Assembly: GCA_002269645.1 (NCBI GenBank)
Contig: NIVC01003236.1
Coordinates: forward strand, 1 to 63,866
DNA length: 63,866 nt
Reading direction: 5' to 3'
Source of the DNA: Macrostomum lignano
Lineage: Eukaryota
Below, piece by piece: positions 35,215 through 63,866 of this stretch (the first letter of the stretch is position 1; each line of letters starts with the position of its first letter). A program made the position numbers and the translations under genes. A model generated the notes under the pieces. It saw only the letters and a program-made list of their open reading frames with translations, had not been told where the DNA came from and searched no databases.

Positions 35215-35257
<43 letters not shown>

Positions 35258-35258
35258 C

Positions 35259-35289
<31 letters not shown>

Positions 35290-35306
35290 CAGTCAGTCAG
35301 TCAGTC

Positions 35307-35344
<38 letters not shown>

Positions 35345-36970: not shown

Positions 36971-37359
36971 CAGCGGCTAATGCGCTATTTTCAAATGCAC
37001 CGATATGTATCGAAAATAGTATTTTTTAACTTTGATTCTTTGCAGCATCAGCTGCTCCTAGACAAAAATATTGAAACGCTCGAGCTTTGCTACTGTCAGT
37101 AAGTGGCCAGGATATTTATTTGAACTTTTTAGTTGTCTTTATCTGTAATAAGTGCATTTTAAATTTGTTATGAATTTTATTTATAAAAATGCCTATTTTC
37201 ATACCGTTGTTTTAAAACCGTGCAATTAAAAATTAGTTTTGGTGCGCAATAAATTTCTGGATTCTTTTTGGCTTCAGTTTAACCATTGTTAATTGCTTTT
37301 TAGCTTCAGTTTTAACTTGAACAAATTTTTTTGAAGCGTTAATATGACTAAATTTTCAA

Positions 37360-38430: not shown

Positions 38431-38928
38431 ATTAATAACATATATCATATTATATGCATAACATAAGTGTTAACGTAACAAGTGAACAGTGACTTATCCT
38501 GGCACTGGCACTTAGACACATCGTTTTCTGGGATGAGCTACAATGTATAGATAATTTAATATAAGCCTACATGCTCCTGTTTCCTTATTAGGGAGTCTTT
38601 CTCAACAGTAGTAATTGGCCGACTCAGACTCCGTCCGTATATTGCTCCAGCAGTCATGTACAACACACACAAGACCGAGCTTCTCTCTCCTTCCCTCCTC
38701 TCTCTCTCTCTCTCCGCTCAGTGAGTGAGCGGTCCGAACTCGGGCAAGAGAAAGTAACGGAAAAAACTGGCTGCACTTGAAGGAGCGGCGGCGCAGATTT
38801 CTTTATAGCAGAGGCCCGTGTCCTTTGAGCTCGATCCCTTGCTCAAAGCAGATTCTTGCTAAACTGGATCTGTCTTCTTCACTTGCCGGCGGTGTTTCAG
38901 TTTAATCCAGTGGAGTAATTTTTCTGCA

Positions 38929-41900
38929 ATGGTTTTAGAGAACGTGAACATTCTTGGACTGGTATCCGTGCTGCTGTTCTATCTGCTCATTCTAGCTGTG
39001 GGCATCTGGGCTGGACGAAGGAGCAAGAACCGCGGCGACAGCGAAGAGGTCATGGTGGCTGACAGGAGCATCGGGCTGACCGTGGGAATCTTCACGATGA
39101 CTGGTGAGTCACAGATCTACGAGGGGCGTCCGGAAAGTAGTGTTACTATTACTCGGTGTGGACGTATGGAAAGTTGCACTTGCATGAGTTTGGTGTCATT
39201 TGAAAGCGGCAAGTCTCTTCTTTAAAATGACACCAATTGCAAGAGATTTGAATATGTGCTTCAAGAGATTTGGACCAAGGGGCTTTAGCACTAAGGGGCT
39301 TTAGCACCAAGGGGCGCCAGCACCAAGGGGCTTTAGCACCAAGGGGCGCCAGCACCAAGGGGCGCCAGCACCAAGGGGCGCCTGCACCAAGGGGCGCCAG
39401 CACCAAGGGGCGCCAGCACCAAGGGGCTTTAGCACTAAGGGGCTTTAGCACCAAGGGGCGCCAGCACCAAGGGGCGCCAGCACCAAGGGGCGCCAGCACC
39501 AAGGGGCGCCAGCACCAAGGGGCGCCAGCACCAAGGGGCGCCAGCACCAAGGGGCGCCAGCACCAAGGGGCGCCAGCACCAAGGGGCGCCAGCACCAAGG
39601 GGCGCCAGCACCAAGGGGCGCCAGCACCAAGGGGCGCCAGCACCAAGGGGCGCCAGCACCAAGGGGCGCCAGCACCAAGGGGCTTTAGCACCAAGGGGCT
39701 TTAGCACCAAGGGGCTTTAGCACCAAGGGGCGCCAGCACCAAGGGGCGCCAGCACCAAGGGGCGCCTGCACCAAGGGGCGCCAGCACCAAGGGGCGCCTG
39801 CACCAAGGGGCGCCAGCACCAAGGGGCGCCAGCACCAAGGGGCGCCAGCACCAAGGGGCGCCAGCACCAAGGGGCGCCAGCACCAAGGGGCGCCAGCACC
39901 AAGGGGCGCCAGCACCAAGGGGCGCCAGCACCAAAGGGCGCCAGCACCAAGGGGCGCCAGCACCAAGGGGCGCCAGCACCAAGGGGCGCCAGCACCAAGG
40001 GGCGCCAGCATCAAGGGGCGCCAGCACCAAGGGGCGCCAGCACCAAGGGGCGCCAGCATCAAGGGGCGCCAGCACCAAGGGGCGCCAGCACCAAGGGGCG
40101 CCAGCATCAAGGGGCGCCAGCACCAAGGGGCTTTAGCACCAAGGGGCGCCAGCACAATTTCCTGTAAAAGTAGCTAGTAGTCCATGCATATAAATAAGTC
40201 ACTGATAATGACAATTGCTCCACAACTTTCCCATTCCAACACGCACAGCCACCTGGGTTGGCGGAGGCTACATCAACGGCACGGCAGAGACGGTGTTTAA
40301 CCCGGCCATCGGGCTGGTTGGTGCTCAGGCTCCGTTTGGCTACGCTTTCAGCCTGGTCTTCGGTTTGTAACAATTCTTGTAGATTTTGTGCGCACTATTT
40401 GCACCAAGTGCATAATTTATAAATTAATTAGAGTAAATAATAAGTATATAACGCGCTTCTTTTAACTGAGTTGCTGGGCCAGCCTCCCAGATCCTCAGTT
40501 GCTGGGCCAGCCTCCCAGATCCTCAGTTGCTGGGCTAGCCCTGTCAGATCCTCAGTTGCTGGGCCAGTCTCCCAGATCCTCAGTTGCTGGGCCAGCCTCC
40601 CAGATCCTCAGTTGCTGGGCCAGCCTCCCAGATCCTCAGTTGCTGGTTGCTGGGCCAGCCTCCCAGATCCTCAGTTGCTGGGCCAGCCTAGCAGATCCTC
40701 AGTTGCTGGGCCAGCCTCCCAGATCTTCAGTTGCTGGGCCAGCCTAGCAGATCCTCAGTTGCTGGGCCAGCCTCCCAGATCCTCAGTTGCTGGGCCAGCC
40801 TCCCAGATCCTCAGTTGCTGGGCTAGCCCTGTCAGATCCTCAGTTGCTGGGCCAGCCTCCCAGATCCTCAGTTGCTGGGCCAGCCTCCCAGATCCTCAGT
40901 TGCTGGGCCAGCCTCCCAGATCCTCATTTGCTGGGCCAGCCTAGCAGATCCTCAGTTGCTGGGCCAGCCTCCCAGATCTTCAGTTGCTGGGCCAGCCTAG
41001 CAGATCCTCAGTTGCTGGGCCAGCTTCCCAGATCCTCAGCTTAATAATATCAGCCACAATCGCTCTCACACCTAGGCGGGCTGTTCTTCGCGAACCAGAT
41101 GCGCACTAGGGGCTACGTGACCATGCTGGACCCGTTCCAGTACAAGTACGGCGAGAGAATGTGCGGCCTGCTGTTTGTGCCGGCTCTGCTTGGCGAAGTT
41201 TTCTGGTCGGCAGCGATTCTGTCCGCACTGGGTGAGCCTCATTAATAGCGAGAGGTGCAAGGTGTATCTACCTACCTAAATGAGCATTGAGTTGTCAGGG
41301 CAGCCTACTATGTGAATTTTCAAAGGACACGAATGCCGGATAGAGAGGCTTCGCGGGCCGTCTGAGGCCCTTGTTTACATTCGAACTAGGCAAAAAATCA
41401 TGTGGCGACGCGAACGCTTCCAGAGTCGAAGTAAAACTTAGGCATCTCAATGAAGTGTCAATTAAATTTACATCTGACACTCCAGATTGCGGGTTTTATG
41501 CTTGATTCAGATGCAACTTTAACCGTAACAGGAGATTAAAATTCGTTTCTGAATTTATTCAACACGCAGGCGCCACACTCAAAGTGATACTAAACATGGA
41601 CAACACTCACGCTGTGATTGTGTCAGCCTGCATCGCACTCGGCTACACTCTGTTTGGAGGTCTCTACTCGGTGGCTTACACAGACGTTGTGCAGCTGTTC
41701 TGCATATTTATTGGACTGGTAAATGATTGCTTCGGCGTCTGCTTGACGTTTTACCTAAAGGTGTCACCTGGATGTGTCTCCAAGTGTGCCTGCAAGTGTG
41801 ATTGCCTAAAGTGCGTCCTGCGCGTGATACATGATGTTTAACAGTTTAACCTTCACTGGGCAGCCTAGTGCAGAGCCTTCGATAACATCTTCCAGTGAAT

Positions 41901-44559
41901 CCTGCTCATTCAGCTAACTCTTGAGAAAATTTACAAGTGAGCCAGTGTCGTACACAGACACGCACGCATACACACGCTCACACAGGGTGTACAACGGGCC
42001 CTAATTGATTTTCTAATCGTCAGGCATGTACACTCTCTGTCAGTGATGGGCACCGCTAAATTTATTTTTAGCGCCGCTAATTAGCGCTGTCGCTAACTGA
42101 TAGAAGAAAAAAGTTGGCGATCGCTAATTAGCGGGCGCCATTTCTACTTTGAGTTTTGCGCAATTAGCGCCGCTAATTTTGGAATGCGCTAATTAATAAA
42201 TACATTTAATATAAACTGCCGTTTCACACGTACTTATGCGCTATTGCACATTTTTAACTCACACTTTTTAAATGAATAAGCTATATAATAATGCTATTGC
42301 TAATAATTTGTTTTTATTATCAATCCTAATAAAAAATCCTCAAGCCGCTGAACTGTCAGAGCAACAGTTATTAGAAAGAGTTCCTAAACTACAATGCTGT
42401 TTGCCTTGAAAAACGTCAAGGGCCCTTGCTACCGGGGCCATGGTCTTATACTCAAGAAGGAAGGCCTGTCGCTTCGCATCATCGCTTAGAATATCAACTG
42501 AGTTGAACGTTGAATTCTTTGATTAAATTAAATTAATCAACAACTTTTTGCTAACGAATTAAAGGTAGTAAGAAAACTTTTGAAAGTCAATGATGAAAAC
42601 AAGATAAATTGTTGATAACGAAAGCAAAAAAAAGATATTCAAATTTCGTTTCGCATTTCTAAGAAAATTAGAAACATTTTAGAGATTTAGTATAGGTGGA
42701 TTTACGTAATATTTAACTTATTACTCAAATATGGTCTCATTTTAAGTATTAAACAGTCATTAACCGTCTAGTTTTATAGCAAAAAAATGAATTTAGCGCA
42801 ATTAGCGATTTTCAGAAAATAATAGCGGCGCTTTGATAGCGCGCGCTAATTTGAATTTCAATTTAGTGGAATTAGCGGCGCTTTAGCGGAATTCAAATTT
42901 AGCGGCGCTAGTGCCTATCACTGCTCTCTGTGCCTTGTGGGTTGGCCCTCATGGTTGCGAATCACAGGACAACCCCCCAGAAATATTTTCTGGCACAAGC
43001 AAGACCCAAATGAATGTTGCCGCACACGGAATAAAACCAGGGGTACTAGTCAGATGCTTAAATTGAATAGAATGATACATTGAAAGCTTGCTGATTGAGA
43101 GCCAACCTATTCACACTTTATCCTCATCAGTGGCTCTCTATTCCGTTCGCCATGATGAACCCGCTGGTGCAGCCCATCGCAACCACAGCGCTCACTCGGG
43201 TTGTGAACGGCACCGAACAGACCGGCTGGCTGGGCACCGTGGCACCTCAGGATGCCGCTTACTACGCCGATAATTTTTTGATGCTCACCTTTGGCGGCAT
43301 ACCCTGGCAGGTGTATTTTCAACGCGTTCTGTCGGCCAAGACGGCTCGAAATGCTCAGTTATTGTCGTACATTGCCGCCTTTGGCTGCTTGGTGATGGCT
43401 CTGCCATCCGTTCTAATTGGAGCTGTGGCAGCTTCAACAGGTAAGAGAGCTGACCCTGATGCAACGTCTTTTGACGCAGTCATACGCACAGGCACACACT
43501 CATACAGGAGTGTACAGCGGCCCTAACTTTATTTATCTTCGTAAATTGCACTAGCAGACCCGAGCCGAGATTCCAATTTAGTCCGAAATTAACGTGACTG
43601 CACTTGGAATCAAGCCTGGGCCTCTGGCACATGGAGCACCGCACCAGACCACTAGGATACGTCCCCCCAACAAATGCCCCTATTCCATCTTACAAACTGG
43701 TAACATGCGCATGGTACTGTTCATGTGGTATCATTAGCCTTGTCCAACACATTCCCCTGCCCCACTGCCAGACTGGGAGAGCACAGCCTACTTCAACCTG
43801 ACCCAGTCGACGCCATTTAGCAAAGACGACATGAAGCTGATTCTGCCGCTAGTCCTGCAGTACCTCTGCCCGCCGGCCGTCGCTTTTGTCGGCTTGGGCG
43901 TCGTCTCCGCCGCCGTGATGTCCTCAGCGGACAGCTCGATCCTCTCTGCCGCTTCCATGTTCGCTCGCAATGTGATGAAGCCGATTTTTTGGCAGACGGC
44001 AACTGACCGCCACGTCATCTGGTCGATGCGGGCAGCCATTGTAGTTGTTGGCATCATTGCTTGCATCTTAGCCATCCAGATCTCGACAATCTACGGCTTG
44101 TGGTTCCTCTGCTCGGATCTTGTCTATGTAGTCCTGTTCCCGCAGCTGATCTCTGTTATCTACCTAGACTGGTCCAACACGTACGGCAGTTTGGCCGGTT
44201 ACGTCACCGGGATGTTTCTGAGAATATCGGCCGGCGAGGCGCTGATTTTCCTGCCCGCTCTGTTCCACTATCCCGGCTTTGTTGACGGCAGCGAATTTTA
44301 TCAACGATTTCCCGTTAAAACATTCAGCATGCTGGCTTCGTTGGCTTCGTCCGCTCTAGTGAGCTACATGACTCACCGAATTTTCACTGAAGGAAAGCTG
44401 CCACCTGCTTGGGATGTTTTTCAATGCGTTGTCCCGAAGGAGATTCGAAGTGTCACCATCGCTGCTGCTGCTGAAGATGATGATGGATTGATGCTGCCAC
44501 CAATGGTTCAGTCGAAGCCAGAGGCCAACGAGCCTGAGTTGCGATCTGATATTGATTAA
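38929..44559 (+). CDS. SLC5A7: High-affinity choline transporter (SLC5A7/CHT1), 6 exons, about 563 aa
   Basis: Exons 38929-39103, 40249-40362, 41076-41231, 41570-41718, 43131-43440 and 43772-44559, with consistent phases. Motifs: [118 protein letters not shown]. Confidence 0.97.
39275..40155. repeat. 16-bp GC-rich minisatellite (GCACCAAGGGGCGCCA)
   Basis: About 55 tandem copies in SLC5A7 intron 1. Confidence 0.97.
40470..41040. repeat. 28-bp minisatellite (TTGCTGGGCCAGCCTCCCAGATCCTCAG) in SLC5A7 intron 2
   Basis: Same family as the array at 16975-17400. Confidence 0.95.
42041..42923. mobile_element. Non-autonomous hAT-like element (MITE), 883 bp, in SLC5A7 intron 4
   Basis: TIRs CAGTGATGGGCAC / GTGCCTATCACTG (12/13). 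Perfect 8-bp TSD CTCTCTGT at 42033-42040 and 42924-42931. Subterminal TTAGCG(C/G)CGCTAA palindromes at both ends. Confidence 0.92.
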
Positions 44560-45512
44560 GCTTGGACATCCGCGTTGTAGCGGGTTAGTACAGTCTATAT
44601 ACTGGTAGCTTGACAAAATTTATTGTTGTTTTTAGATTCGCTAAAGTATTACAGTAGTTGAGGAATAAAACTTAAGGCTATCTAATGTATAGATGAAGCT
44701 ACTTAAATATTTTTTATAATTGGGTAGCTCATCCGTTAGCTGTAGCTAGAAATGCACACGCTCCGGAAATTAACAAGAAAGTAGAATATTGTATTTGATT
44801 AATTCTATTTTCTCATTCGCAGTTATTCACAAAATTCGAGGTTGTTTTTTTTTAATTTCAAAATTTTGATTTTTTTTAAATCTGCTTGAAGCATATACTG
44901 TCAAAGTATTATTGTTTTTTCAATATCTAACTTCAAATATTTTTGTTTTTATTTTTAATATAAATTTTGCGCTCATATTTGTGCATTGCATACTGTAGTA
45001 TCAATGCCGATGCAAACGATAGTTATTCCGTTTCAAAAAGGTTGTAGAATCAATATTTAACTTTTTAATCAAGTATTTTGTTTAAAGTATTTTTAATTGC
45101 TACCTCGCAAATCCTCAGCAGTTTTATTCATTTTTAGTGAACTCGACGAAGGTTGTATCTTGATGTTCATTTTCTTTATAGCTCTTTCTGTAGTTTTTTT
45201 TTACTTTTCGGCTGACACTTTTATGCTTTACGATAGTTTGTGTCCATTCTACTTTTGCGATTATTATAACATGAAAATTCACTCAAATACACGTTGATTT
45301 TTACAGCACTCTTTGTTGAAGCGCTGCCCGAACTTAGAAGAGATGGGTTATCAAGCTTATTAAATAATAAAACTCATTCCACACTTAGAATTAACTGACT
45401 ATTAGCTGATTAACTGACTCCCCTTTTTCATGGCTGTATAATTTTAATTTTTCGAGATTAACTACGATGGGAACAAGCCTACTACAACTATCGCCTGTTT
45501 TGGGCCTTCTAA

Positions 45513-46297
<785 letters not shown>

Positions 46298-46636
46298 TCT
46301 GTTTTGGTGTTTTGTAGTTCTGATTCTCAGAAATTCTGTATTGCGTTTCTCAGCATGATCAGCTTCAGCGAATGCCTTTCTAAATAGAGCGTCTTTGTAA
46401 AATAATTTGAACGGGCGAACAAGGAGTGTTTAACTATTTATAGGCTCCACCATACCGCTCACTGGCCAGTACACAAACCGACGTTGAAAAACATGAAGTG
46501 CAGTAGTTGATTTTACCCTCATTGCCGTCAACCTTAATGAATTATTCATGAAGATCTTAAACCGCCTTAATTTTACTGGAATAACACTGCACGCGGTAAG
46601 TCCTTTATAAGAACGGCACGGTAAAGAGCTCCTCAC

Positions 46637-49297: not shown

Positions 49298-50537
49298 GTA
49301 AATCCTAACCTAATAGTTACCATGACAACAGGAGACGAAGCATCCGCCTTGAAGCCGGCTGTGAGGAAACAACGATTTCAACTTAAAAACCTTATAATAA
49401 AAAACCGAATTACATCATATATAAAAGTACGAGAAATCCTTTTTAGTCGTTCTCTACATTTTATCCAATATTAACGCTGTACATTGGAAACTGCGTTGTG
49501 ACAGCTAGTCTGGTAAACTCCATTAATTTATTGGATTTGACTTGTTATACAACAGCTTATAGTAGTCCCTTAGCTTCACCGGTTAGCCAGTAGCTTCGCT
49601 TAATAGTAGCAAGTAGAGTGTAGTTTCATTAAATTTTAATTCAGTTTTAGCTAAAATAACGAACAAACAATTTTCGCTGCAGGTACTTCAAGCGAGTTGC
49701 CTTGCTGTAAATCTGGTTACAAACCAAATACTTCGTGGTAATCGGCAAGAAAAATCATCCAATAATCGACGAGATATACAAAGTCAGCCTGCTGTCACTG
49801 ATCAATCGAGGCAAGTCGTTGCTATGAATACTACAGGCTGCATCTTGCCAAACTAAATTTGATCGATAATAAATACTTGAAACAAATACTTGAATTTACT
49901 TCAAACGTATCCCTCCAAAGTATCTTTTTATCACACTTTGTTAATCACAATTTAATAGTGATTAGGTGAATAAGATAAACAGCCTACTTGAGTCAACAAA
50001 TATACTCTGAAGTTGTTAAGCCGTTTATATACGAGAAGTAACATATTTCAAGGTAAAATAACATAACAGAATAAATTACAATGTCATATAGTTAATTACA
50101 CAACCGACTCTAAAATGATAGAGCCAACTCAATTAGAGATAAAAGCTCGTCGACAAATACGCACGAAACTAACAAAAGATTATTTACATTAATTAATTTC
50201 CAAGGCAAACGCACTGTCGGGAACACATCAAGTTAGCAAACCTAGTCAAACACAGGCGCAAATAATCCATCAATTTATGAGTTAGCCAATAGCACTACAT
50301 GTAAATGGGATTGCCATTCAATTATCGGGTATTTCCTATTCCCCGATAGCAAATAACGATGATTGCTGCCCATGAACACTGCTTAGTTTGGACTATATGC
50401 AATCATAAAACGCATACCGGATGCAATATTGTCAGCTTCAATACATCCATTGTAGCATTCAGAGACTACATGTACATATAACAGCATCGCAGATGCGTAT
50501 TAGTCGAATTAGAAGCATCTAAGTCGAATCTTTCGCG

Positions 50538-51866
50538 ATGGCTGTCGAAAGCATGAAGCTACTTGCAATATTGCTTCTGTTCTGTTCGATCCTCGCAACG
50601 GAATGCATCGCCAAGCGGAGAGACTATCAAGCCGAGCTGTTCAAATACTTGAAGAACAACATTACTGACTACAGTCCGAAACTGCGACCTACGCTCGACC
50701 CAGACCAGGAGGTGGAAGTACACGTCATCGCCTCGCCAAGAATGATTGTATCCGTGGACAGCGCCAAGCAGAGCATGACAATAGCTGGCATGTTTTTTGC
50801 CAGCTGGTACGAGGAGCGACTGGTCTGGGACCCCCAGCTGTTCGGAAATGTCACAATGATGGACTGGGACAGCAACCAGCTCTGGCTCCCGGTCATAATC
50901 GTCTACAACGGCATGGGAGACAATCAACTACTCAGTCCTCAGTTTCCGCCGTACATCACTTCCGTGCAGTCCAATTTGTCTGTGGTATCGACAACCTGGA
51001 GACAGGAGTGGGAGTTCTCTTGCGAGTTTCATATGACCCGCTTCCCTCTGGACCGTCACATCTGCGACATGGAGCTGTTCATGAATGCCCGCGCATTGGA
51101 CAAAATCGTCCCGAGAAAAGGCTTATTATTGGCAAACTCATCGTTTGAATACAACGAAGGCGCGGCTTTTGCTCGTAACAGCGAATGGCGGGTGCTGAAC
51201 CTCAGCACATTCATACGGTACAACGACTTCAAAATGTTCGAAAATCTGCCGCCAGTGAAAATGCCGACCTTTGTGATGCGACTGGAGATCGAGCGAGTGT
51301 CCACTTACTACATGCTCAACGTGGTGGCTCCCCTAATGCTGCTCACGCTGCTCCAGGTGCTCGTCTTCTTCGTGCCAGTCGAGTCTGGAGAGAAGCTGGG
51401 CTTCGGCATCACCATCACGCTGAGCTACACGGTGTTCCTGCTGCTGCTGGACGGCCTGCTGCCCAAGTCGCAGTCGATGCCGGCCGTGGCGTCGTTCATC
51501 ACGGCGGCCATGGTGCTGTCGACGTCGTCTCTGCTGCTGACGTCGGTGGCGATTCGGTTCCACTTCGCTGCGGAGTCTCAGCCGATGCCGTCGTGTCTCC
51601 GGGTCGTGTTCGTGAGCTGCCTGGGCCGCGTGATGCTGTGCGGTGAGAGGCGAGGCGGCAGCAGGACGGCACCGGAGGGAGACCTCGATGATTCTGCTGT
51701 GAACAAACCGAGCCGTGACGATGTTAGGAACGGAGATACGTCCGGAGAGCCGAGGCGCTCGGAGTGGCAGGTTGCAGAGGTCGCCGTGGAGCGGCTGCTG
51801 ATCCTCCTAGGCTGTCCGGTCACTTTGGCCATCACGTTTTGTTTCCTTATTTTTCCGTTTCTTTGA
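50538..51866 (+). CDS. Intronless Cys-loop ligand-gated ion channel subunit A (divergent, non-alpha nAChR-like), 442 aa
   Basis: Signal peptide, LRP motif, WxPxI, Cys loop CEFHMTRFPLDRHIC (C-x13-C), four TM helices, and M2 ESGEKLGFGITITLSYTVFLLLL of cation type. No vicinal CC in loop C. Confidence 0.93.
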   Translation: MAVESMKLLAILLLFCSILATECIAKRRDYQAELFKYLKNNITDYSPKLRPTLDPDQEVEVHVIASPRMIVSVDSAKQSMTIAGMFFASWYEERLVWDPQLFGNVTMMDWDSNQLWLPVIIVYNGMGDNQLLSPQFPPYITSVQSNLSVVSTTWRQEWEFSCEFHMTRFPLDRHICDMELFMNARALDKIVPRKGLLLANSSFEYNEGAAFARNSEWRVLNLSTFIRYNDFKMFENLPPVKMPTFVMRLEIERVSTYYMLNVVAPLMLLTLLQVLVFFVPVESGEKLGFGITITLSYTVFLLLLDGLLPKSQSMPAVASFITAAMVLSTSSLLLTSVAIRFHFAAESQPMPSCLRVVFVSCLGRVMLCGERRGGSRTAPEGDLDDSAVNKPSRDDVRNGDTSGEPRRSEWQVAEVAVERLLILLGCPVTLAITFCFLIFPFL

Positions 51867-52334
51867 AAAAACATTCGGTGGCACCTTCACGGAGATGGGT
51901 TTTCTGATGGGTTAAAAATTCTCGTGTCTGACGAGAGTTTCGATATCTAAGCACCAAATTAACTTTGAAGATGATACGAAAACATTTTAATAGTATAATA
52001 AAGTCGGTTACTAATATATAGTTGCACTGAGTGAGGTGAAGAGTAAGTATCACGCTTCGACGTCACTAGTAAATTTTTTGGCGAACTGAATGTATACATG
52101 TATACGGACACTGTACTAAAAAATTATGATTGCTCTTTTCTAGGCCAAGTTTTCATATGGTAAGACCCTCTTGGCACAGCGCAAAAAGCTTAAAAAGATC
52201 AGAATAAACAACTTTTCTATGCATTGCCGCTATCCAATAAGATTCTTTTAAGTTTTCGATTAAAGCTTGTCAAAAAACGCATGCTTGCTTCAGGTGTTAT
52301 TTATAATATAAAGTAGTACAATCATATAATGATA

Positions 52335-52615
52335 GATAAAACCTGCCCTAATGGGCAGATTTGCAACCGACAGCTCAGCCGCAGCTATTGCGTGTCGCAT
52401 CTGAAGGCTGCGTACGGCTGTTCAGTCCGAGGACTGGGGGGGGGGGTTCATACACACCCTCAATTACCCCCAGCTAATGCTGGCACCCATTTTACAGCTG
52501 GGTGAACTGAAGCGTGTCAGTGTCTTGCTCGAGGACACAAATTGTTCCAAGAGGGTCGAGAATCGAACCCCAGACCTTTCAGTCGTGAGTCCGACGCTCT
52601 GACCACTAGGCTAGA
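52335..52615 (-). mobile_element. tRNA-derived SINE
   Basis: On the minus strand: A box TAGCCTAGTGG (52613-52603) and B box GGTTCGATTC (52569-52560), followed by GTGTCCTCGAGCAAGACACT...CACCCAGCTGTAAATGGGT, which resembles conserved SINE central domains. It does not form a complete tRNA. Confidence 0.8.
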
Positions 52616-53521
52616 TTTAACTACATCCAATAATAAGACAGTTCAGATGACGCAAGTGCAGGAAGGTTCCGTGGGAATCGGCCAGAATTGCAAGTCTGAA
52701 AACGGCGCAGTATTATTTGATGCAAACATTTTGAAGGGACTGCGTGCGGAAAACTTATTATAAATCACGCATGGGTTTCATCATATATTCTTTACCTTTT
52801 CATCCATATACATGTGAAAAATACTTGCTTGCTGTTATTTATTTTAAGTTACGCGTCCTAAAGCGCGTCTGCTGCCCCTTGAGGATCAAGGGAAAGACTG
52901 AGCACTACCGTGACTTATTGATATGTAATGTTTAAGGGTCTTTGACCTTAACTATGTATATAAGCTAGGACACAATGGATCAATGGTACAAGCTAAAATT
53001 AAATTGGGCATTAGTTATTATTATACGCTATCGTATCTCAGATGAATCACATGTAAGTTCTTAGTTTGCGGCCGATTAGAAACTTATAGCTGCATTTAGT
53101 CATTCTACATTAGATGTCCACACGCTCCTCGAGCGAGCTTTATCCAGAGGCAAATATCAGCAGAGGAGCTGCGTAGAATCCGCAAATATCAGTCATACCT
53201 GGCAAAGTCAATTTAGAAAATGAATCGCAAATAATACTAATTTTCTGATGAGACGAAAGTCACACAATGAGATATACCTGGTTCAGTCCTGCATCAGATT
53301 AATTACGGGATACTCAGTGACTGCAATTCACAGATGCTCGTAGCAACTAAATAGGCAGACTATGCAAACTTCAGAATTTGATAGCCTACTGCAGTGTCAA
53401 CATGTAAAACGCATTTACGCTTGTATAGCTCAAAGGCTCGGGTTCAATAGGATCTGGGGATTTTATTGTCCAAGCTTAGCACGCTGCTCATCATTGAGAC
53501 GGCTAACTCAACTACATCCAC

Positions 53522-54820
53522 GTGCCACAGTTCAGCCTTACCCGCTTCTGTTTGGTCTTCAGCGCCATCGCTAGTGTTCAGGTGGCTCAGGCTAGAGACT
53601 TTGAAGCGGAATTGCTCGATTACTTGAAGACTAACAACTCTCGGTATAGCCGTACGCTCAGGCCGAAACTAGATCCACATCAGGAGGAGCTCGGTGCTTG
53701 TCTGCTGAAAATTCTGGACGTAGACAGCGCCAAGCAGAGCGTCACCATAGCCGCAACTGTCTACGCGATGTGGTTTGATGAACGCCTCGTCTGGGACCCG
53801 ACCCAGTTTGGGAACATCACAATATTGGAATGGGACAACCAGAAAATCTGGTTTCCTCCAATCGTTATTCTGAATGGTCTCGGCGACAATCAGCTGCTGA
53901 AGCCGGAGTTTCCATCATTTTTGGCCTCGATGTCATCGAACAAGACATTGGTGTCGACTATTTGGCGACCAGATTTCGAGTTCACCTGCCAATTAAGCAT
54001 GTACCGATTTCCAATGGATCGACACGTATGCAGTTTTAGTTTGTATATGGAGGACCAGGCTCAGCTATACAAAAGTATAGTTCCAAGCAAGAAATTTTTG
54101 TGGAATGCGGAGAATGAGCAAGATGTGGAGTTAAATGAACTCGGTGCGCATAAAAACAGCAGCGAGTGGCGACTGCTAAGTTTGAGTACTTCGGTAGAAT
54201 ATGGACTTGTCAACTTTTTTAAGAATTCACCACTGATGCTAATACCAGCCTACAATATGCAAATGGAAATCGAGCGAGTGTCCACTTACTACATGCTCAA
54301 CGTGGTGACTCCACTACTGCTGCTCACGCTGCTCCAAGTGCTTGTCTTCTTCGTGCCAGTCGAGTCTGGAGAGAAGCTGGGCTTCGGCATCACCATCATG
54401 CTGAGCTACACGGTGTTCCTGCTGCTGCTGGACGGCCTGCTGCCCAAGTCGCAGTCGATGCCGGCCGTGGCGTCGTTCATCACGGCGGCCATGGTGCTGT
54501 CGACGTCTTCTCTGCTGCTGACGTCGGTGTCGATTCGGTTCCACTTTGCTGCGGAGTCTCAGCCGATGCCGTCGTGTCTCCGGGTCGTGTTCGTGAGCTG
54601 CCTGGGCCGCGTAATGCTGTGCGGTGAGCGGCGAGGCGGCAGCAGGACGGCGCCGGAGGGAGACGCCGATGACTCCGTGGTGAGCAAGGCGAGCGACGTC
54701 GGTGAAAGGCGCTCGGAGTGGCAGGTCGCAGCGGTCGCCGTGGAGCGGCTGATGATTTTCTTGGGCTGTCCTGCCGCAGTGGCCATTGTGGTTGCATTTG
54801 TCATTGTTCCATCCTGTTAA
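53522..54820 (+). CDS. Cys-loop ligand-gated ion channel subunit B (paralog of 50538), about 430 aa, with no in-frame ATG before the signal peptide
   Basis: Cys loop CQLSMYRFPMDRHVC, the same M1-M3 as subunit A, and a signal peptide FSLTRFCLVFSAIASVQVAQA. The frame opens after TAA at 53504. A 3' splice site (CTAAC...CACAG) ends at 53530. Confidence 0.88.
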   Translation: MPQFSLTRFCLVFSAIASVQVAQARDFEAELLDYLKTNNSRYSRTLRPKLDPHQEELGACLLKILDVDSAKQSVTIAATVYAMWFDERLVWDPTQFGNITILEWDNQKIWFPPIVILNGLGDNQLLKPEFPSFLASMSSNKTLVSTIWRPDFEFTCQLSMYRFPMDRHVCSFSLYMEDQAQLYKSIVPSKKFLWNAENEQDVELNELGAHKNSSEWRLLSLSTSVEYGLVNFFKNSPLMLIPAYNMQMEIERVSTYYMLNVVTPLLLLTLLQVLVFFVPVESGEKLGFGITIMLSYTVFLLLLDGLLPKSQSMPAVASFITAAMVLSTSSLLLTSVSIRFHFAAESQPMPSCLRVVFVSCLGRVMLCGERRGGSRTAPEGDADDSVVSKASDVGERRSEWQVAAVAVERLMIFLGCPAAVAIVVAFVIVPSC

Positions 54821-55369
54821 TTTTACTCGGCTAGACAAAAAATCGAAGCACAGTGATAGAGCGCTCTGTAGTAATATGAACTTATTAAACGTAATTTAAA
54901 AAAGCAGTCTCTTTTGTCTAATAGTTATTCTCTTTTACGTTCTCTAAGAAATGCCTCGCTGCTGAAGCCTTGGGGTCCAAAATTAAAGGTCACATTTGCT
55001 TAAACTATTTACACTAATGGGCAATGCTTAAAATACAAAATCCAACTTTAAAATCGAAGTGGTGTCAATCGTTCTAAATACACAAATTTTATTCTTTTTG
55101 TGAATCTTTGTGGACTAATTTCTTTCTTAACCTTTTCTGCAACAAAGGGCATGATACTCCAAAACTGAGTCTATTTTGTACCTTATGTATGGAAAAGCTT
55201 TCACACAGAACTTACGGATTCAGAACGGTGAGTTGTATACAACTGTCACAACTTGAGACATCGCAAAATCTGAAGCGATCGCTGAGTTGACTTCTGCAAC
55301 TTTAACTTTTCGACTGCACCTTCGACTGCACCCGCATACTGCCGTCCAGGGCCATGAAAGGCACAGAGT

Positions 55370-55745
55370 GAGGACCAAGGGTTTATTAGGCTGAGGACCA
55401 TGTGTTCATTGGGCTGAAGACCATGGGTTCATTGGGCTGAGGACCACGTGTTCATTGGGCTGAAGACCAAGGGTTCATAGGGCTGAAGACTATGGGTTCA
55501 TTGGGCTGAAGACCATGGGTACATTGGGCTGAGGACCACGTGTTCATTGGGCTGAGGACCATGGGTACATTGGGCTGAGGACCACGTGTTCATTGGGCTG
55601 AGGACCATGGGTACATTGGGCTGAGGACCACGTGTTCATTGGGCTGAGGACCATGGGTACATTGGGCTGAGGACCACGTGTTCATTGGGCTGAAGACCAA
55701 GGGTTCACTGGTTTGAGGACCATGACTTCATGAGAACTGAGGACC
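55370..55745. repeat. 23-bp minisatellite (CATTGGGCTGAGGACCATGGGTA)
   Basis: Direct reading, with two alternating variants. Confidence 0.93.
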
Positions 55746-56512
55746 AATAATGTGGTAGCGTGTGGCGTGTGTCTGGGGTGTTTGCATGGTGCTAGTTTGG
55801 TTTGGGTGTGTTATCGAATTATCGATTGTTCGTCCGAAGCTTCTAACGTTTTCGGCTTTGATAAATCTAAAGACAAAATATGTCAATAAATAAACTTTAT
55901 CTGACATTTTCCAATATGCGAAATTTCCTCCACTCAATTGGCAGTGAAATTTGATAGCGAAGCTGCTATTCTAGTATGATGCTTCGAATTTGGACGAAGC
56001 AATTGCTTCTCTTTCGACACCTAGATTTCGCCTCGAATAGTAAATTAATTTCACAAAAATATCAAAGCAGTCACGAACCTATAGAGTAAACACCTGAGCC
56101 ATTTTTACACAGACATGTATAGATGCATGGACACCTGAGGTATAGGCCGGTGGGATATTTTCGAATCTCTTTTAGGGTTATTATTGTCATCTGGATCGGT
56201 ATCTGCCAGTCAAGGTCAACTGATTATAGGCTTTTAGCCTGTTAGTCAGTTCTGCAAAGCCTGTTAGACAGTCTGTAGAGATCTCTAAAACATAGTATAA
56301 GCAGACTACTAGAAGTGGAAAGATAAAATATTTAAAAGACAAATTTTACATGCTTGGGTTCATACTCAATTTTTAATAGTAATCACGAAAACAGTAAATG
56401 TCTATTCCACTATGCGAAAAACCGGTTCTCAACATCTAATTTTAGAACTTCCAAATATGGTAAATGTTGACCTGAATGCTCTTTGCCGCCTCTCCTTTGA
56501 TATCAATTACCG

Positions 56513-58280
56513 GAGGAGGGGCACAGAGGAAGGCATTCATGCCTTCAAAAGGAGTACAGGGTGGAGCGCCCATAGTCATGCGTCAGGCTCTGCCCTGGAT
56601 TTTGTAGAGATTACCGAAATTCCAAAATTGCCGAAAGTGGGCTAGATGACCGCTAGCCCACACGAGGCTGGCGTAACAGATTGAGGTGCGCATAATGGCA
56701 GTGTAAATCCACCACAGTTTTCTGGGGGTGAGCCCTAGGTGGTTCCTACGGCGCGCCTGATCTGAGCCAGGACAGCCAGGGCTTTTTTGGCTTTGGTTTG
56801 GATGTGCGGAGTCCAGTTAAGCCTGTGGTCCAGAGTGAGGCCCAGGCCGCGGACGTGCTTCTCCATGGAAATATCCTTTCCATAGAGGGCGAGGGGCTTA
56901 ATGGTCCAGAGCAGTTTGTTGGTAAACATGACCGCTGTGGTTTTCGACTCTGAGAGTCTAAGGCCACATTGGTTTGCCCAACGCTCCGCTCGTCCCAGAA
57001 AGCCCTGCAGAAGATCTCTGAGGTATCAAACGAGGGACCCTCGCATATGGTGGTCACATTATAGGCATAGCCCACCTTGAGAATGGTGTCATGGAGATCA
57101 CTGCAAAGCAACTCATCCATGCGTCCTTTCTGGACAGGCGCCGTTAGAGAGCTGCTGTTCAGGTGGACCACGACAGTGCGGTTCCGGATCATGAACATGA
57201 TCCACCGGACAAGGGGAGGGTGCGTGGCCCTGGAGTCCAGGGCTCTGCAAAAGGCCTCGAAGATGACATTGTCAAAGGCCCCCTCAATCTCCAGGAAAAG
57301 CGAGAGGGCAAAGCCGCTGCCAAGAACGGCCCTCTTCAGGAAGTCAACGATGACATGGAGGGCACTCTCAGTGGACCTGCCCGCGCGGAAGGCGTGCTGG
57401 TTCTGCGAGAGTGGGAAGCGCTTTAGCTCGATTGAAAGTAAGCGCCAAAGCACCAGTCTTTCGAGGAGCTTAAGGCAGAAGGAGGTAAGGCTGATAGGCC
57501 TGAATTCACCTATTCGTAGTCGCAATATCCAGGCTTGGGGATAAAGACCACCCGGGCCTCTCTCCATGCAACTGGTACATAGCCCAGCTCCACACAAGCT
57601 CGGAGGAGACGACAGAGCAGGTCCAGGAAGCGGTGGTTTTTCACTGCCTCGTGCAAGAACGCTTAGTAGATGCCATCGGGCCCAGGCGCCTTGAACGGGT
57701 TGAAGGACCTTGCCGCTCTAATAATGCGGTCTTTGGTGATCATAGACTTTGCTTGGCCTTGCCCTCCCACGGTGTGGTCAGGCGGGCCCTGCTGAGTCGG
57801 AGATTTAGGGAAGAAACTGTTGAGCATGAGCTCTAGAGTCTCTTCAGAGCTCTCTGTGACCGAGCCATCAGGTCTCTTATCAACAGAGAGTTTAGAAAAA
57901 CGGTCGTTCGTGAGTGCCTTTACCACGTGGGCTACGGGGCGAGAGCCCTCAAGCCCTTCGCAATATTGGCGTCACTTGGCCGCCTTGGCCCTTCTGACTT
58001 GGCCCTTAAACTCGTGGATAGCACGGGTATAGGCCTCTCTATCAGATGGGTCTTTGGTTTTGAACGCTCGTCTTTGGAGGGTCCTGGCTCGGCGCCGAAG
58101 GCTCTGGGTTTCACCAGGGAGCAGATTTCTTGCCTTTGAAGGCCTTAAGAGGGCAGGCTGCCTCATAGGCAGTGGTGATCGCCCCGTCCAGGGGGGAGGC
58201 GTGATCATCCACAACCCGGCAGTCAGAGAGGTCACTGGGGACTGCTAGATCGGAACCCAACCATTCGATGGATGGAGTTG
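56513..58280 (-). mobile_element. Degenerate non-LTR retrotransposon (R1/LOA-like LINE), RT region, dead copy
   Basis: FNPFKAPGPDGIY, FRPISLTSFCLKLLERL, QHAFRAGRSTESALH, FLEIEGAFDNV. YADD is mutated to YAYN, the PQGG segment is deleted, and there are several frameshifts and stops. Confidence 0.9.
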
Positions 58281-59684
58281 CCCTAGCTCCAGAGGCTTAT
58301 TCTCTGGCGGCTGCTTTCATGCGAGCTGACAGCAATGCCCCTCAGCAATAATCAGCACGCCTTCCGTACCGAGAGAACGACTGACAGCGCCCTGCATGCG
58401 ATAGTCGAGAAGATTGAACGGGCGGTCCCGGTGTAAAAAGTAGGGTCAAGCGGACGTCTTTCGGACCCCGACGGGTCCTCATTGGGGTTGCGTCTGCTTT
58501 GAGAAAAAAATGTCTAGTTTTTACATTAAATCACTCTAAAGGGCCATATTTCAGTTACTTCATGGCTAAAAAGTTTGTCCACTTTGTACTTATGTGGGTC
58601 CGTTATTCGTCCCCAATGGTCCGTTTAGATCCGATCGACTCCTAAAAAATGCAAGTTTTTTCTAACGCCGTATAAATGTCCCTTTTGCTGTGATTTCGGT
58701 TAGTTTTGGGTTTATTTTCAAGTATTCACCTTTGTGTACTGACAACTAGCACTTTTTGACAGTCCGATTTAAAAAGATACGTCAGATGAAAAATGACCCT
58801 TGGTCATTCTCCAGTTGCATAATTTACTACTTGTGATAGTAGAAAAGTTGGCGAAGTTTCTTTTCAAACTTTTCAAACTTTTCAAACTTTAGTCTTTTGT
58901 GTTTTGGGGCTTCTAGATTGCAGTCGCTTGACATTAGCCTTTCAGTTGAAAACAAATTAATCTTTTTGTGTGAATGTTATATTTTCGTTTTTCATAGACT
59001 AATTTTTACGCTATCTTTTAAAGCTACATTTTGGTTGGGGTGTCGCGTAAAATACGTATCAACAGTAAGTCTGATCATGCCTTACTACTTTCGACAGTAG
59101 GGTTCACCAGAAAGGACTATACCCTGAGTGATAACTGCTTTTTATTAAAAATACCAAATTACCTGGTTATTAATTGCGTACAATCACTTTGATTATATAA
59201 ATATTTTGCAGTGCCAGAGCTTTTGAATTTGGAAAAGAAGTTGGTCAAATTTTCAGTGCGCACCTTATCCGTGTGAATAAGAGTTTAGCAACGTTGGGCG
59301 TGGGTGGGTTAAAACTCAAGAATTTCGGGAAAACAGAAAGTGAATGAGCTCAATGTAGCACTGAGCCGCCGAAGGGCTGGCGCCAGATTTTGGTGGACCA
59401 GGGCCCCGAAGCCCTAACTAAGATCAGTAGCGCAACGAGAAATTTTTAGGGGGGGGATTCTGGAGGGTAAAGCCCGGGAGGAAGCGGAGGGGTGTCAGGG
59501 TTGCTTTCACAAGGTCGAAATTTCATATCCTCGAAAATACATATCTCACATAGCACCCTATCCTTTCTTATCTCCCATTATCTTCTTATTTTTACCATCT
59601 CTTATCTCCTCGCTTCTCTCGTTTCTCTCCTCTCCATTTTCTCTACTCTCAGCTCCTTTCCTAGAGAAATTTCATATATTGTTT

Positions 59685-60065
59685 GGGAGCCTGCTGTTTG
59701 GGAGGGGACCGCTTGCTGTTTGGGAGGGGACCGCTTGCTGTTTGGGAGGGGACCGCTTGCTGTTTGGGAGGGGACCGCTTGCTGTTTGGGAGGGAACCGC
59801 TTGCTGTTTGGGAGGGGACCGCTTGCTGTTTGGGAGCCTGCTGTTTGGGAGCCTGCTGTTTGGGAGGGGACCGCTTGCTGTTTGGGAGCCTGCTGTTTGG
59901 GAGGGGACCGCTTGCTGTTTGGGAGCTTGCTGTTTGGGACCCTGCTGTTTGGGAGGGGACCGCTTGCTGTTTGGGAGCTTGCTGTTTGGGACCCTGCTGT
60001 TTGGGAGGGGACCGCTTGCTGTTTGGGAGCTTGCTGTTTGGGAGGGGACCGCTTGCTGTTTGGGA
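59685..60065. repeat. Minisatellite of about 14-22 bp units (GCTTGCTGTTTGGGAGGGGACC) inside the EnSpm-like element
   Basis: Direct reading. Confidence 0.9.
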
Positions 60066-60213
60066 ACTTAGAAAGAATTAGAAATTAAAGAATACGTAAA
60101 ATACGCATTTAGAGAGATTTAGAGTTATATAGCGACAGGTACAGGGAGGCAGATAAACATGTTCCAGGTCCTCTCTAACCCTGTGTGCAACCCACCCAAA
60201 CCTACATTTACAG

Positions 60214-60394
60214 AGGACGACCCTCTGAGCGCGATGTAGAAGTCGCCGTTATTCAGGTGCTGAAACACGCTGCCGAGAGGGAGGCCGCACGCCAACGTAG
60301 AAAATCCCTACGTGAAGAGCACCACGAAATGCCAGGAGACACCAGCGAGGCGCAGCAAGGGATGAGAAAGCGGGCCAGAATTGACTCTGATTGA
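60214..60394 (+). pseudogene. Terminal-exon-like coding remnant carried by the EnSpm-like element
   Basis: Acceptor CATTTACAG followed by GRPSERDVEVAVIQVLKHAAEREAARQRRKS...RKRARIDSD*. It loosely resembles C-termini of transposon accessory proteins. The identity is not established. Confidence 0.4.
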
Positions 60395-60484
60395 GATGTC
60401 GAGGAGTAACTGTTTATTTCTTTTCACCACAAAAACATTAATTTTCTGGATACGCACCAGAATATCCTATGTATTAAAATTCAG

Positions 60485-60850
60485 ATAGAGATAATTAGGA
60501 TTCAGGTAAGAGATAATTAGGATTTAGGTAAGAGATAATTAGGATTTAGGTAATAGATTAGGATTCAGATAAGAGATTAGAATTCAGGTAAGAAATTAGG
60601 ATTCAGGTAAGAGATAATTAGGATTCAGGTTAGAGATTAGGATTCAGGTAAGAGATAATTAGGATTTAGGTAATAGATTAGGATTCAGATAAGAGATTAG
60701 AATTCAGGTAAGAGATTAGAATTCAGGTAAGAGATTAGGATTCAGGTAAGAGATAATTGGGGTTCAGATAAGAGATAATTAGAATTTAGATAAGAGGTTA
60801 TTAGGATTTAGGTATTAGATCAATAGAATTCGGGTATTTGATAATTAGGA
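60485..60850. repeat. 19-22 bp minisatellite (TAAGAGATAATTAGGATTCAGG)
   Basis: Direct reading. Confidence 0.9.
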
Positions 60851-62743
60851 CTATTTCGGCCACTGCTGCCAAACCTGCTGCTCAACGACCCTGCCCGTTC
60901 TGCTAATGTTGCGCTAAGTGATGTTATATATTTCATACTTTCTATTTTACCCGTAAACTATATGTAACTACGTAAACAGGAAATAAATGATAACTAAAAT
61001 GCATTTTTCATTTCGCTCTTCAAAGTCTTCGTATACGTGATATAACTTTAACAAACTGAAACACTGCACGCAATGCAACCTACTGAAAGTAGTGTGTAAA
61101 TACTGGGGTCGAATAAAAGATTGCAAGTAGGAGTCATGAGGACCCCTACTGAACAGGGTCCGGTCTGCGTCTGAATCAGTCCTACATCAGCGTCTGGCGG
61201 ACTCGATTTCAGTAGGACATAAGCACCCTACCCAGACGGCCCAAAACTGACGCCCGATGGACGGCTTTTTTTACACCGGGGTACTGGGTGACGGTTACGC
61301 CCTGGCTCTTTTTCTCGACATTGTTGGCGCCTTCGACAACGTTATCTTTGAAGCGTTTCAGAGGACCCTTCAAAACCACAAAGCTCACGCTACCCTCATA
61401 CGGTGGATCATGTACATGATCTCTAACCGTACGGTCACTGCCCAACTTCTCGGGCAAACTACCTCCGCCAGAGTCTGTAAGGGTGGACCCCAAGGCGGAG
61501 TCCTCAGCCCGACGCTCTGGAATCTGGTCATGGACGCTCTTCTGGGTGACTCCCGACCTGATCCCGTTTTCAAAGTCGGGTATGCTGACGACGTCACTGC
61601 CATTGTGGCAGGGCCGTCCCCCAGCACGCTCAGGGATCTGATGCAGAGCTTTATCCGCAAAGCAGAATCCTGGGCCAATGACAACGATCTGGAACTCTCT
61701 GAGCCCAAAACCGTTGCCATTATGTTCACCAGCAGAATACGCTGAAACATACGACCTCTGCAGTTATAAGGCAGAGATATTGCCTTCGCGCACCAGACCA
61801 GATGTCTCGGGTCATAATTGACCACCGGCTCAACTGGTCCTTTCACGTGAAAGCAAAAGCCAAGCGTGCCTCAACCATCCTGGCCCAGCTCCGACGAGCA
61901 CTTGGCACCTCTTGGGGTCTATCCCCAAAGCGACTTTGGTGGATCTACAATTCCGTAGTTAGACCTGCCATTACGTACGCCTCGGTTGTCTGGGTTAGCG
62001 CTACCCAGGTCAAAAGTCATGCAGATTTGCTCAACGCAATCCAGGGCAGAGCGTGTAGGCTTATCTGCAACGCCACCAGGTCCACGCCCTTTGCCGGCAT
62101 GGGGGCCTTCCTTAATCTACCGCCTCTCGACCTCTTCGTCAGGGGTGAGGCGGCTAGAACGACGCGGCGTTTACTTGATGCCGGTGTCAAATTCCTTTGC
62201 ATGAGGGCACCTGCTAAGCGGAACCTCGTCCCGCATAGCGACCTGTGCCTCAACATTCTTAACGAGTGTCAGGCCAATCGCGTCTTCACCGATGGCATTG
62301 CCTCAACGCTCAACATATTGCTAAAAACTTTGCTTTCCTGACCCTCAACCGCAGTGGCTGACTCTGGACATATTCGTCACAGCTGGCTGGTCCCTGCCAT
62401 CCTGCGATTCTGCCAGAAAGTCGGATTTTAGCCATAAGCGATAGTGTATTCAGTACACCCCTGTACGCCAATTACACTGCGCCTTAGTGCAGCCTTTTCA
62501 AGCCTCCAAATTTCATCAGCACGTCGATCACACGCGGCTGCATCAGCTCTGACTTCTTTAGTCACTGGCCTTCATCCAGGCGGAGCTTCTGAACCTTCAA
62601 CAGGTGGCACCAGGTGAGTTTGAGAAGTTGCACAACAAAAAGTTAGCCCGTGCTCTTGAATTTCGTGTGCCTGCGTTGATCCGTTCAAGCGCATTAAAAA
62701 ATTGTCAGAGGGGGGGTAAATTCCCCCTTGGTAGTTCTACTGA

Positions 62744-63866
62744 TAATAGTAGCAAGTAGAGTGTAGTCTCATTAAATTTTAATTCAGTTTTAGCTAAGCA
62801 ACGACCAAACAATTTTCGCAGAGTACTTCAAGCGAGTTGCCTTGCTGTAAAGCTGTTTACAAACCAAATACTTCGTGTGATCGGCAAGAAAAATCATCCA
62901 ATAATCGACGAGATAAACAAAATCAACCTGCTGTCACTGAATAATCGAGGCAAGTCGTTGCTATGGATACAACAGAATGCATCTTAGGACAGGATGCATA
63001 TTTAGAACAAATTACTTGAATCGACTTCAAATGTATCACTGCAAAGTAATTTTTTATCAAACTTTGGTAATCACGATTTATAGTACCGCATAAACAGCCT
63101 ACTTGAGTCAACAAATATACTCTGAAGCTTTTAAGCCGTTTATATGCGAGAGGAAACATATTTCGAGGTAAAATAACAAAACAGAATAAATTACAATGTC
63201 ATATAGTTAATTACACAACCGACTCTAAAAATGATAGAGCCAAGACATCAATTAGACATGAAAGCTCGTTGAAAAATACGCACGAAACTAATAAAAAGAT
63301 TATTTACATTAATTAATTTCCAAGGCAAACGCACTGTCAGGACAAATCAACCTACGAGTAATCAAACACAGACGCAAATGATCCATCAATTTATGAGTTA
63401 GCCAATAGCACTAAATGGGATGGCGATTCAATTATTCAATTATTCAATTATTCAATTATTCAATTACTCAAACGGGTATTTGCTATGCCCCGATAGCAAA
63501 TAACCACGATTGCTTCCCATGAACACTGCTTAGTTTGGACTATATGCAATCATAAAACGCATACCGGATGCAATATTGTCTGCTTCTATGCATCCATGTA
63601 GCATCCAGAGATTACATATACCGGCATCGAAGCAGTGTATTAGTCGAATTAGAGGCATCTAAGTCGAATCTTTCGCGATGGCTGTCGAAGGATGAAGTTG
63701 CTTGCAATATTGCTTCTGTTCTGTTCGATCCTGGCAAAGGAATGCCTCGCCAAGCGGAGAGACTATCAAGCCGAGCTGTTCAAATACTTGAAGAAAACAA
63801 ATTACTGACTACAGTCCGAAACTTGCGACCTACGCTCGAACCCAGACGCAGGAGGTAGAAGTACAC
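62744..63866 (+). repeat. Segmental duplicate of 49601 to about 50727 (upstream region and 5' end of receptor A)
   Basis: Collinear similarity of roughly 85-90% by eye. A second short block, 62336-62404, matches 49129-49197. Confidence 0.9.
63678..63866 (+). pseudogene. Third Cys-loop receptor copy (A-like), 5' end only, frameshifted as given
   Basis: MKLLAILLLFCSILAKECLAKRRDYQAELFKYLK, then a +1 insertion leading to TGA at 63806, with further single-base indels. It could be a pseudogene or long-read indel errors. The window end truncates it. Confidence 0.7.

Follow-up and report, generated by a model that had tools for sequence, protein, structure and literature searches.

How can two receptor genes that diverged long ago share almost the same nucleotide sequence in an internal region that is flanked by diverged sequence on both sides? 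This question is raised by two tandem genes, here called A and B, in a 63,866-nt stretch of the Macrostomum lignano genome (GenBank assembly GCA_002269645.1, contig NIVC01003236.1, forward strand), which is referred to as the window. Both genes are intact paralogous open reading frames (ORFs) for subunits that resemble nicotinic acetylcholine receptors (nAChRs). They lie on the same strand, 2981 bp apart, with a 1.65-kb spacer. Their pore-forming regions were nearly identical even at synonymous sites, whereas synonymous sites of their extracellular domains (ECDs) were saturated. We consider it quite probable, from comparison of the two sequences, that a recent, domain-restricted interlocus gene conversion took place between old tandem nAChR-like paralogs.

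A sequence-only reading of the window had described a 396-nt tract with about 12 differences and a run of over 100 identical bases, ECDs that share about half of their amino acids, diverged fourth transmembrane (TM) helices (M4) and flanks, and a boundary at the EIER motif of the ECD/TM junction. All of this was reproduced by alignment. The main tract, which covers M1 to M3 and the start of the M3-M4 loop (Table 1), was identical at 384 of 396 nt (97.0%) without gaps. Its differences were exactly 12 (7 transitions and 5 transversions, 4 of them nonsynonymous) and were spread over the tract, and the longest identical run was 108 nt. The encoded proteins agreed at 128 of 132 residues, and Nei-Gojobori (NG86) estimates were 0.077 for synonymous divergence (dS) and 0.014 for nonsynonymous divergence (dN). 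The ECDs shared 106 of 222 residues (48%) and 57% of nucleotides; their proportion of synonymous differences (pS) was 0.84, which is saturated and beyond Jukes-Cantor correction, and dN was 0.42. The 5′ edge of the tract was sharp and fell at the ECD/M1 junction: nearly every codon differed up to position 51287, and the tract then opened with 39 identical bases from the I of EIER.

At the 3′ side, the limits given by the sequence-only reading held for the near-identical main tract but not for the homogenised region as a whole. Past a diverged part of the M3-M4 loop (29 of 42 aligned nt identical, 69%; three indels totalling 27 nt), homogenisation resumed in a second patch. M4 and the C-terminus then diverged again (40 of 66 nt identical, 60.6%), and the post-tract sequence had a dS of 0.885 and a pS of 0.52. 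Uniform dS along the gene, which had been named in advance as an outcome that would speak against conversion, was not observed. A blastn comparison aligned 51276-51832 of gene A with 54257-54786 of gene B and gave one weak match in the ECD; similarity ended at 51832 and 54786, and no A-B similarity was found by blastn in the 5′ flank, the 3′ flank or the spacer. An internal homogenised region of 0.4-0.5 kb with diverged sequence on either side is what interlocus gene conversion classically leaves behind.

The key test was based on codons whose amino acid agrees in A and B, with the chance expectation taken from the codon usage of the genes themselves. The ECD contained 97 such codons, of which 33 were identical, compared with 34.8 expected by chance. 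The ECD synonymous sites are fully randomised, because codon identity at conserved residues was at chance level. In the main tract, 115 of 123 same-amino-acid codons were identical (0.935; Fisher test against the ECD, P = 7.6e-22). The excess persisted (P = 2e-18) against the expectation from codon bias of the tract itself (0.586), a value that is circularly inflated. When the columns of both genes were shuffled 10,000 times, the longest identical run averaged 17.9 nt and never exceeded 40 nt (observed, 108), and the longest run of identical third positions was at most 21 (observed, 54). A two-breakpoint model placed the best segment at 51283-51802, with a log-likelihood gain of 128 units. The second patch had 12 of 13 same-amino-acid codons identical (P = 2e-5 at the ECD rate; P = 0.01 at the tract codon-bias rate), and its near-identity is significant in its own right. 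The near-identity of the two tracts is therefore real and far beyond chance.

Table 1. Positions of the receptor genes, their segments and other annotated features (numbering of the window)
Feature	Position	Strand	Remarks
Gene A	50538-51866	+	Cys-loop (nAChR-like) subunit; single ORF, 442 aa; ATG start, signal peptide
A, mature ECD (ligand-binding domain)	50613-51287	+	anciently diverged from that of B
A, main homogenised tract	51288-51683	+	pre-M1, M1, M2, M3, first 41 codons of M3-M4 loop; GC3 0.88
A, helices within tract	M1 51306-51374; M2 (pore helix) 51387-51464; M3 51477-51560	+	
A, diverged part of M3-M4 loop	51684-51752	+	interrupts homogenised region; B counterpart 54665-54706
A, second near-identical patch	51753-51797	+	RRSEWQVAEVAVERL; pre-M4 and start of M4; 43/45 nt same as B
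A, M4 and C-terminus	51798-51863	+	diverged again; B counterpart 54752-54817
Gene B	53522-54820	+	paralogous Cys-loop receptor ORF; 432 codons; no in-frame ATG at 5′ end
B, mature ECD	53588-54268	+	GC3 0.55
B, main homogenised tract	54269-54664	+	M1-M3 and start of loop; GC3 0.84
B, helices within tract	M1 54287-54355; M2 54368-54445; M3 54458-54541	+	
B, second near-identical patch	54707-54751	+	
Copy C	62744-63866	+	duplicate of A upstream region and first ~188 coding nt; ends at window end
Copy C, parts	upstream 62744-63678; coding 63679-63866	+	blastn to 49601-50723
Choline transporter, high-affinity (CHT1/SLC5A7-like)	43831-44559	+	terminal coding exon; best matches 53-61% identity
DAO family (FAD-dependent oxidoreductase)	36452-36970	+	C-terminal part; Pfam 6.9e-19
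RVT_1 reverse-transcriptase fragments	56746-57597; 61257-62341	-; +	non-LTR type; between gene B and copy C
GC3, G+C content at third codon positions.

The first question for this pattern is how much of it can be produced by selection on the protein. Close relatives of A and B were limited to three metagenome-derived sequences (P0001, P0002 and P0003; 45-61% identity) in a search of approximately 15 billion proteins, and the next-best matches were at or below approximately 31% identity. The M1-M3 region was strongly conserved at the protein level in A, B and these relatives, starting exactly at RVSTYY. Because the pore protein is conserved across relatives, the contrast between a constant pore and a variable ECD is in part ordinary differential purifying selection. 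However, protein-level selection is insufficient, because the identity also covers synonymous sites and a loop segment that varies among relatives: the main tract runs 17 codons into the variable loop, and A and B remained identical through MLCGERRGGSRTAPEGD, where P0001 and P0002 are entirely different. Recent conversion rather than purifying selection had also been the view of the sequence-only reading, and synonymous sites that are saturated in the ECD and nearly untouched in the tract agree with it.

Base composition changed at the tract as well. The rise in GC3 that had been noted for B (ECD, 0.55; tract, 0.84) was confirmed but is not peculiar to B, since A rises from 0.68 to 0.88. GC3 reached 1.0 in one 30-codon window of the tract; in three other coding stretches of the window it was 0.63-0.65. 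This elevation hints that the region may have been converted more than once, with GC-biased conversion. The tract was also rich in NCG codons (in A: TCG, 7; ACG, 7; GCG, 4; CCG, 4), and CpG at codon positions 2 and 3 was common, unlike in the ECDs. The CpG richness could reflect GC-biased conversion or the absence of CpG decay. With regard to direction, codon usage of the tract was closer to the non-tract codons of A than to those of B (delta logL of approximately 25), and in 9 of the 12 differences a G or C in gene A stood opposite an A or T in gene B. Both comparisons weakly favour an A-type donor and B as the recipient; copy C, a partial duplicate of A, or unseen paralogs would be equally possible donors.

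We propose that A and B are old tandem paralogs between which a recent (tract dS of approximately 0.08) nonreciprocal homologous recombination occurred. A segment of approximately 0.4-0.5 kb, comprising M1, M2, M3 and part of the intracellular loop, would have been copied from one paralog into the other, probably into B from a donor of A type (A itself, copy C or an unseen relative). The route may have been interlocus conversion during double-strand-break repair or after unequal pairing in meiosis. Strand invasion and heteroduplex extension would require pre-existing homology, and family-wide conservation starts at the tract edge (RVSTYY). Conversion tracts that extended into the ECD would exchange one ligand-binding domain for a different one and would be eliminated by selection. 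The loop interruption and the pre-M4 patch may be explained either by patchy mismatch repair of one indel-bearing heteroduplex or by two nested events. GC-biased conversion would then have acted on the tract on more than one occasion.

Several observations weigh against this account. The diverged loop inside the homogenised region demands an extra assumption, namely the patchy repair or the two events. The evidence on direction from codon usage is weak, since a better fit to the GC-richer gene is expected of any GC-rich tract. Gene B has no obvious ATG, which makes its function uncertain. Look-ups and metagenome scans yielded no DNA of orthologs or additional paralogs: exact-protein look-ups for P0001 and protein A, made to find a DNA source, returned nothing; a profile-guided scan of metagenome contigs for DNA of the relatives gave 555 matching pattern stretches without a homologous one among them; and a scan with a degenerate back-translated pattern gave 0 matches, this pattern (with Ile at DG[I]LP) being aimed at the relatives and not at A or B. 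The last point is technical. One of the tracts may have been partly overwritten by cross-mapped reads or by consensus collapse during assembly or polishing, so that the copies would look more similar than they are, a concern raised by the extreme repeat richness of the window and by the one-base indels of copy C, which can be read as signs of an error-prone assembly. We consider such an artefact very unlikely. The tracts are not identical, as the 12 substitutions are spread over them, 4 are nonsynonymous, and both ORFs are intact. Furthermore, cross-mapping presupposes sequences that are already highly similar, both tract edges are flanked by well-resolved divergent sequence, and A and B are free of indel errors over 1.3 kb each.

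Still less likely, in our estimation, is a recent birth of B as a chimeric gene, in place of conversion of a B that already existed, in which unequal crossover or template switching joined a foreign 5′ half (promoter and ECD) to the 3′ half of an A-type gene. The 5′ breakpoint is indeed single and sharp and falls at a domain boundary, and the post-tract pS (0.52) is lower than that of the ECD (0.84), so the 3′ part is somewhat closer. However, after one crossover the two genes would have everything 3′ of the breakpoint in common, including the downstream flank, and what was observed was an M4 with 60.6% identity, a divergence like that of the ECD, three indels in the loop and no similarity in the 3′ flank. 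The domain swapping by unequal crossover that had been offered as an alternative to conversion is disfavoured on the same grounds, and a chimera with the second breakpoint that would be required is operationally a conversion.

Lowest in probability we place an explanation without recombination, in which synonymous sites of the TM region are held by selection (membrane-insertion codon bias, RNA structure or an overlapping antisense element). The very high GC3 of the tract (0.84-0.88, locally 1.0) raises chance codon identity to approximately 0.59, and a long antisense ORF covers the tract of B (54314-54838). The observed identity of 0.935 was nevertheless far above this level and extended into the loop segment whose protein sequence already differs in relatives, and conserved residues of the ECD showed no synonymous conservation. 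In A, the antisense ORF is split in two (51333-51563 and 51578-51874), as would be the case if it had arisen incidentally from GC-rich coding sequence. A recent whole-gene duplication followed by rapid divergence of the ECD was rejected, as synonymous sites of conserved ECD residues were at chance level.

The sequence-only reading had gone further than conversion and compared the locus to a diversifying receptor system with a constant channel and variable sensors. This comparison was not borne out. A single gene pair was available, its ECD divergence is old, and with a ratio of nonsynonymous to synonymous proportions (pN/pS) of 0.32/0.84 = 0.38 and saturated dS the ECD gave no sign of diversifying selection. 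No set of many paralogs sharing one homogenised module was found within the window, where only A and B are complete.

Membership of A and B in the pentameric ligand-gated channel (pLGIC) superfamily was judged by the Pfam domains PF02931 and PF02932 at gathering thresholds. Both domains scored above these in gene A (Neur_chan_LBD, 1.2e-24; Neur_chan_memb, 3.9e-18) and in gene B (1.3e-22 and 3.3e-18, respectively). A Cys-x13-Cys loop with an FP(L/M)D core was present in both (A: C162-EFHMTRFPLDRHI-C176, at 51018-51065; B: C156-QLSMYRFPMDRHV-C170). A search of the Protein Data Bank returned 224 pLGIC chains at E ≤ 1e-3, and the best matches were muscle and neuronal nAChR alpha subunits (8e-34), followed by 5-HT3A. 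When aligned to the muscle alpha subunit, M2 of A and B (GEKLGFGITI(T/M)LSYTVFLLLLD) kept the -1′ Glu, the 9′ Leu and the M2 register. The M2 helices of the two genes differ at position 8′ only (Thr in A, Met in B). The selectivity filter of pLGICs is an established basis for inferring a cation-selective pore, and by this standard the pore of A and B is probably cation-selective. In the same alignment (9dmg_A), the loop-C Cys-Cys, its flanking tyrosines and the loop-B Trp were not found in A or B: YSCCPDTPY of 9dmg_A lay opposite FKMFENLPPVKMP, and TWTYDGS lay opposite a segment without Trp. A and B were not classed as acetylcholine receptors, because the canonical acetylcholine-binding residues of the orthosteric site are lost. 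By domain content and alignment, A and B are orphan nAChR-like subunits of the pLGIC superfamily.

The 5′ end of gene B may be less anomalous than its ORF suggests. The ORF opens after a TAA at 53504, and the ORF listing starts at a GTG at 53522. By eye, a candidate mini-exon was seen upstream, consisting of an ATG at 53362 plus 42 nt with a GTAAAA donor at 53404; a candidate CCACAG acceptor ends at 53530 and splices in frame onto the TTC at 53531. The candidate spliced N-terminus (region 53362-53531) reads MQTSEFDSLLQCQH followed by FSLTRFCLVFSAIASVQVAQA... Gene B may thus have a putative 14-codon mini-exon instead of being strictly intronless or start-less.

Copy C, which runs to the end of the window, duplicates at least 0.94 kb of sequence upstream of A, so that the aligned stretch is mostly noncoding. 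Positions 62312-62405 are assigned to it as well. Identity to A was 90.4% over ungapped columns and 95.1% in the coding part. The 188 coding nt contained 5 one-base indels, and the tblastn match was split over two frames; copy C is probably a pseudogene on these features. A comparison across "all paralogs," as had been suggested earlier, can be made within the window only for two complete genes and this truncated, frameshifted copy, and no TM-only fragments or further donor copies were found by tblastn and blastn of the whole window. Because the A-B tract (97.0%) is more similar than A and C (90.4%), the conversion is probably younger than the A/C duplication.

In mechanism, two receptor systems come closest to the A-B pair. 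One is the TLR1/TLR6 pair of mammals, in which conversion maintains the similarity of a C-terminal block (TM segment and most of the TIR domain) despite divergence of the ligand-binding leucine-rich repeats (Kruithof et al. 2007, PMC2077338). There, conversion was read as limiting divergence of a functional module while other domains diversify, and independent events were reported in nine species (PMC2077338). Like TLR1/TLR6, A and B are tandem receptor paralogs with a divergent ligand-recognising N-terminal part and a near-identical TM block. Unlike these single-pass innate immune receptors, A and B are pentameric channel subunits, and their tract is shorter and interrupted (approximately 130-170 codons, compared with approximately 300) and is known from one pair in one genome rather than from nine species.

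The other system is the clustered protocadherins. In fugu, these genes have divergent 5′ and homogenised 3′ regions, including synonymous sites, with significantly raised GC3, which the authors took as a mark of repeated conversion (PMC1852091); regional conversion in protocadherin clusters was also described by Noonan et al. (2004), as cited in that paper. A and B share with them the tandem single-exon receptor units, the homogenised synonymous sites of the 3′ part and the raised GC3. They differ in that the protocadherins have many paralogs per subcluster at >99% identity, whereas A and B are two genes at 97%, and fold and function are unrelated.

By family and gene structure, the nearest comparison is with nAChR-like genes of other invertebrates. 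Intronless, tandemly arrayed nAChR-like expansions are found in molluscs and other lophotrochozoans (Jiao et al. 2019, PMC6896357; the term "gene conversion" is absent from this paper), and cephalopod chemotactile receptors derive from nAChRs (reviewed in PMC11526382). A and B resemble both in their single-exon, tandem arrangement with a probably pseudogenised copy nearby and in the loss of canonical acetylcholine-binding residues with a cation-type pore kept. The resemblance is not one of established orthologs: the nearest proteins to A and B are metagenome-derived and 45-48% identical. The diversifying selection reported for the pocket of chemotactile receptors is not demonstrable for A and B. 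Among the next-best database matches (P0004-P0016), many were 800-1200 aa long with two or more pLGIC-matching stretches; these long proteins probably stem from annotation that merged neighbouring tandem intronless receptor genes of other genomes into one model.

As one event in one gene pair, the conversion would be nothing out of the ordinary after tandem duplication, and the pair would be a new example of a well-known process. Its distinction would be that of a clean, statistically unambiguous, domain-restricted interlocus conversion in a pLGIC gene pair. To our knowledge, domain-restricted concerted evolution has not been described for pentameric ligand-gated channels, and we found no paper on domain-restricted conversion in pLGICs within the searchable literature. 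For phylogenies of expanded invertebrate nAChR-like families, full-length or TM-weighted trees would misplace such paralogs and underestimate their age. Because alignments of this kind misplace converted paralogs, trees based on the ECD only are needed.

A broader scenario is that the patch is one instance of an ongoing, selection-tolerated concerted evolution of the M1-M3 pore module across a larger lineage-specific array of orphan nAChR-like genes. Conversion would spare the ligand-binding domains, its GC bias would drive pore GC3 near saturation, and homogenised pore helices, compatible with one another in heteromers, would allow free heteromeric mixing of sensor domains. We regard this scenario as rather unlikely. 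If the pattern recurs family-wide, it would suggest that pore compatibility of co-assembling subunits is upheld by recombination and not only by purifying selection.

The other coding sequences of the window belong to unrelated families. The best matches of the choline-transporter exon in protein searches were spread over nematodes, flatworms, molluscs (bivalves) and annelids, which points to a bilaterian, probably a protostome. The nAChR-like genes follow approximately 6 kb downstream of this exon in the same orientation, and the adjacency of a cholinergic-pathway gene to nAChR-like genes may be a coincidence. The DAO segment presumably represents one exon of a gene for an enzyme like D-amino-acid or D-aspartate oxidase. 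Both exons are intron-bounded, as in ordinary animal genes. The RVT_1 fragments are degenerate, with short and broken ORFs, and are relevant background to a retrogene origin of the intronless receptor genes.

The window as a whole had the appearance of eukaryotic nuclear DNA, with a patchy GC content per kilobase (0.26 to 0.65). Microsatellite and minisatellite arrays occurred in dozens and at exceptional density (4000-24400, 34500-40950, 45467-46387, 55300-55780 and 59680-60850), with periods of 4, 8, 16, 21, 23, 25, 28, 31, 35 and 36 nt. These arrays gave rise to many spurious long ORFs on both strands, and the array at 45467-46387 (approximately 800 nt) translates as poly-Val in one frame.

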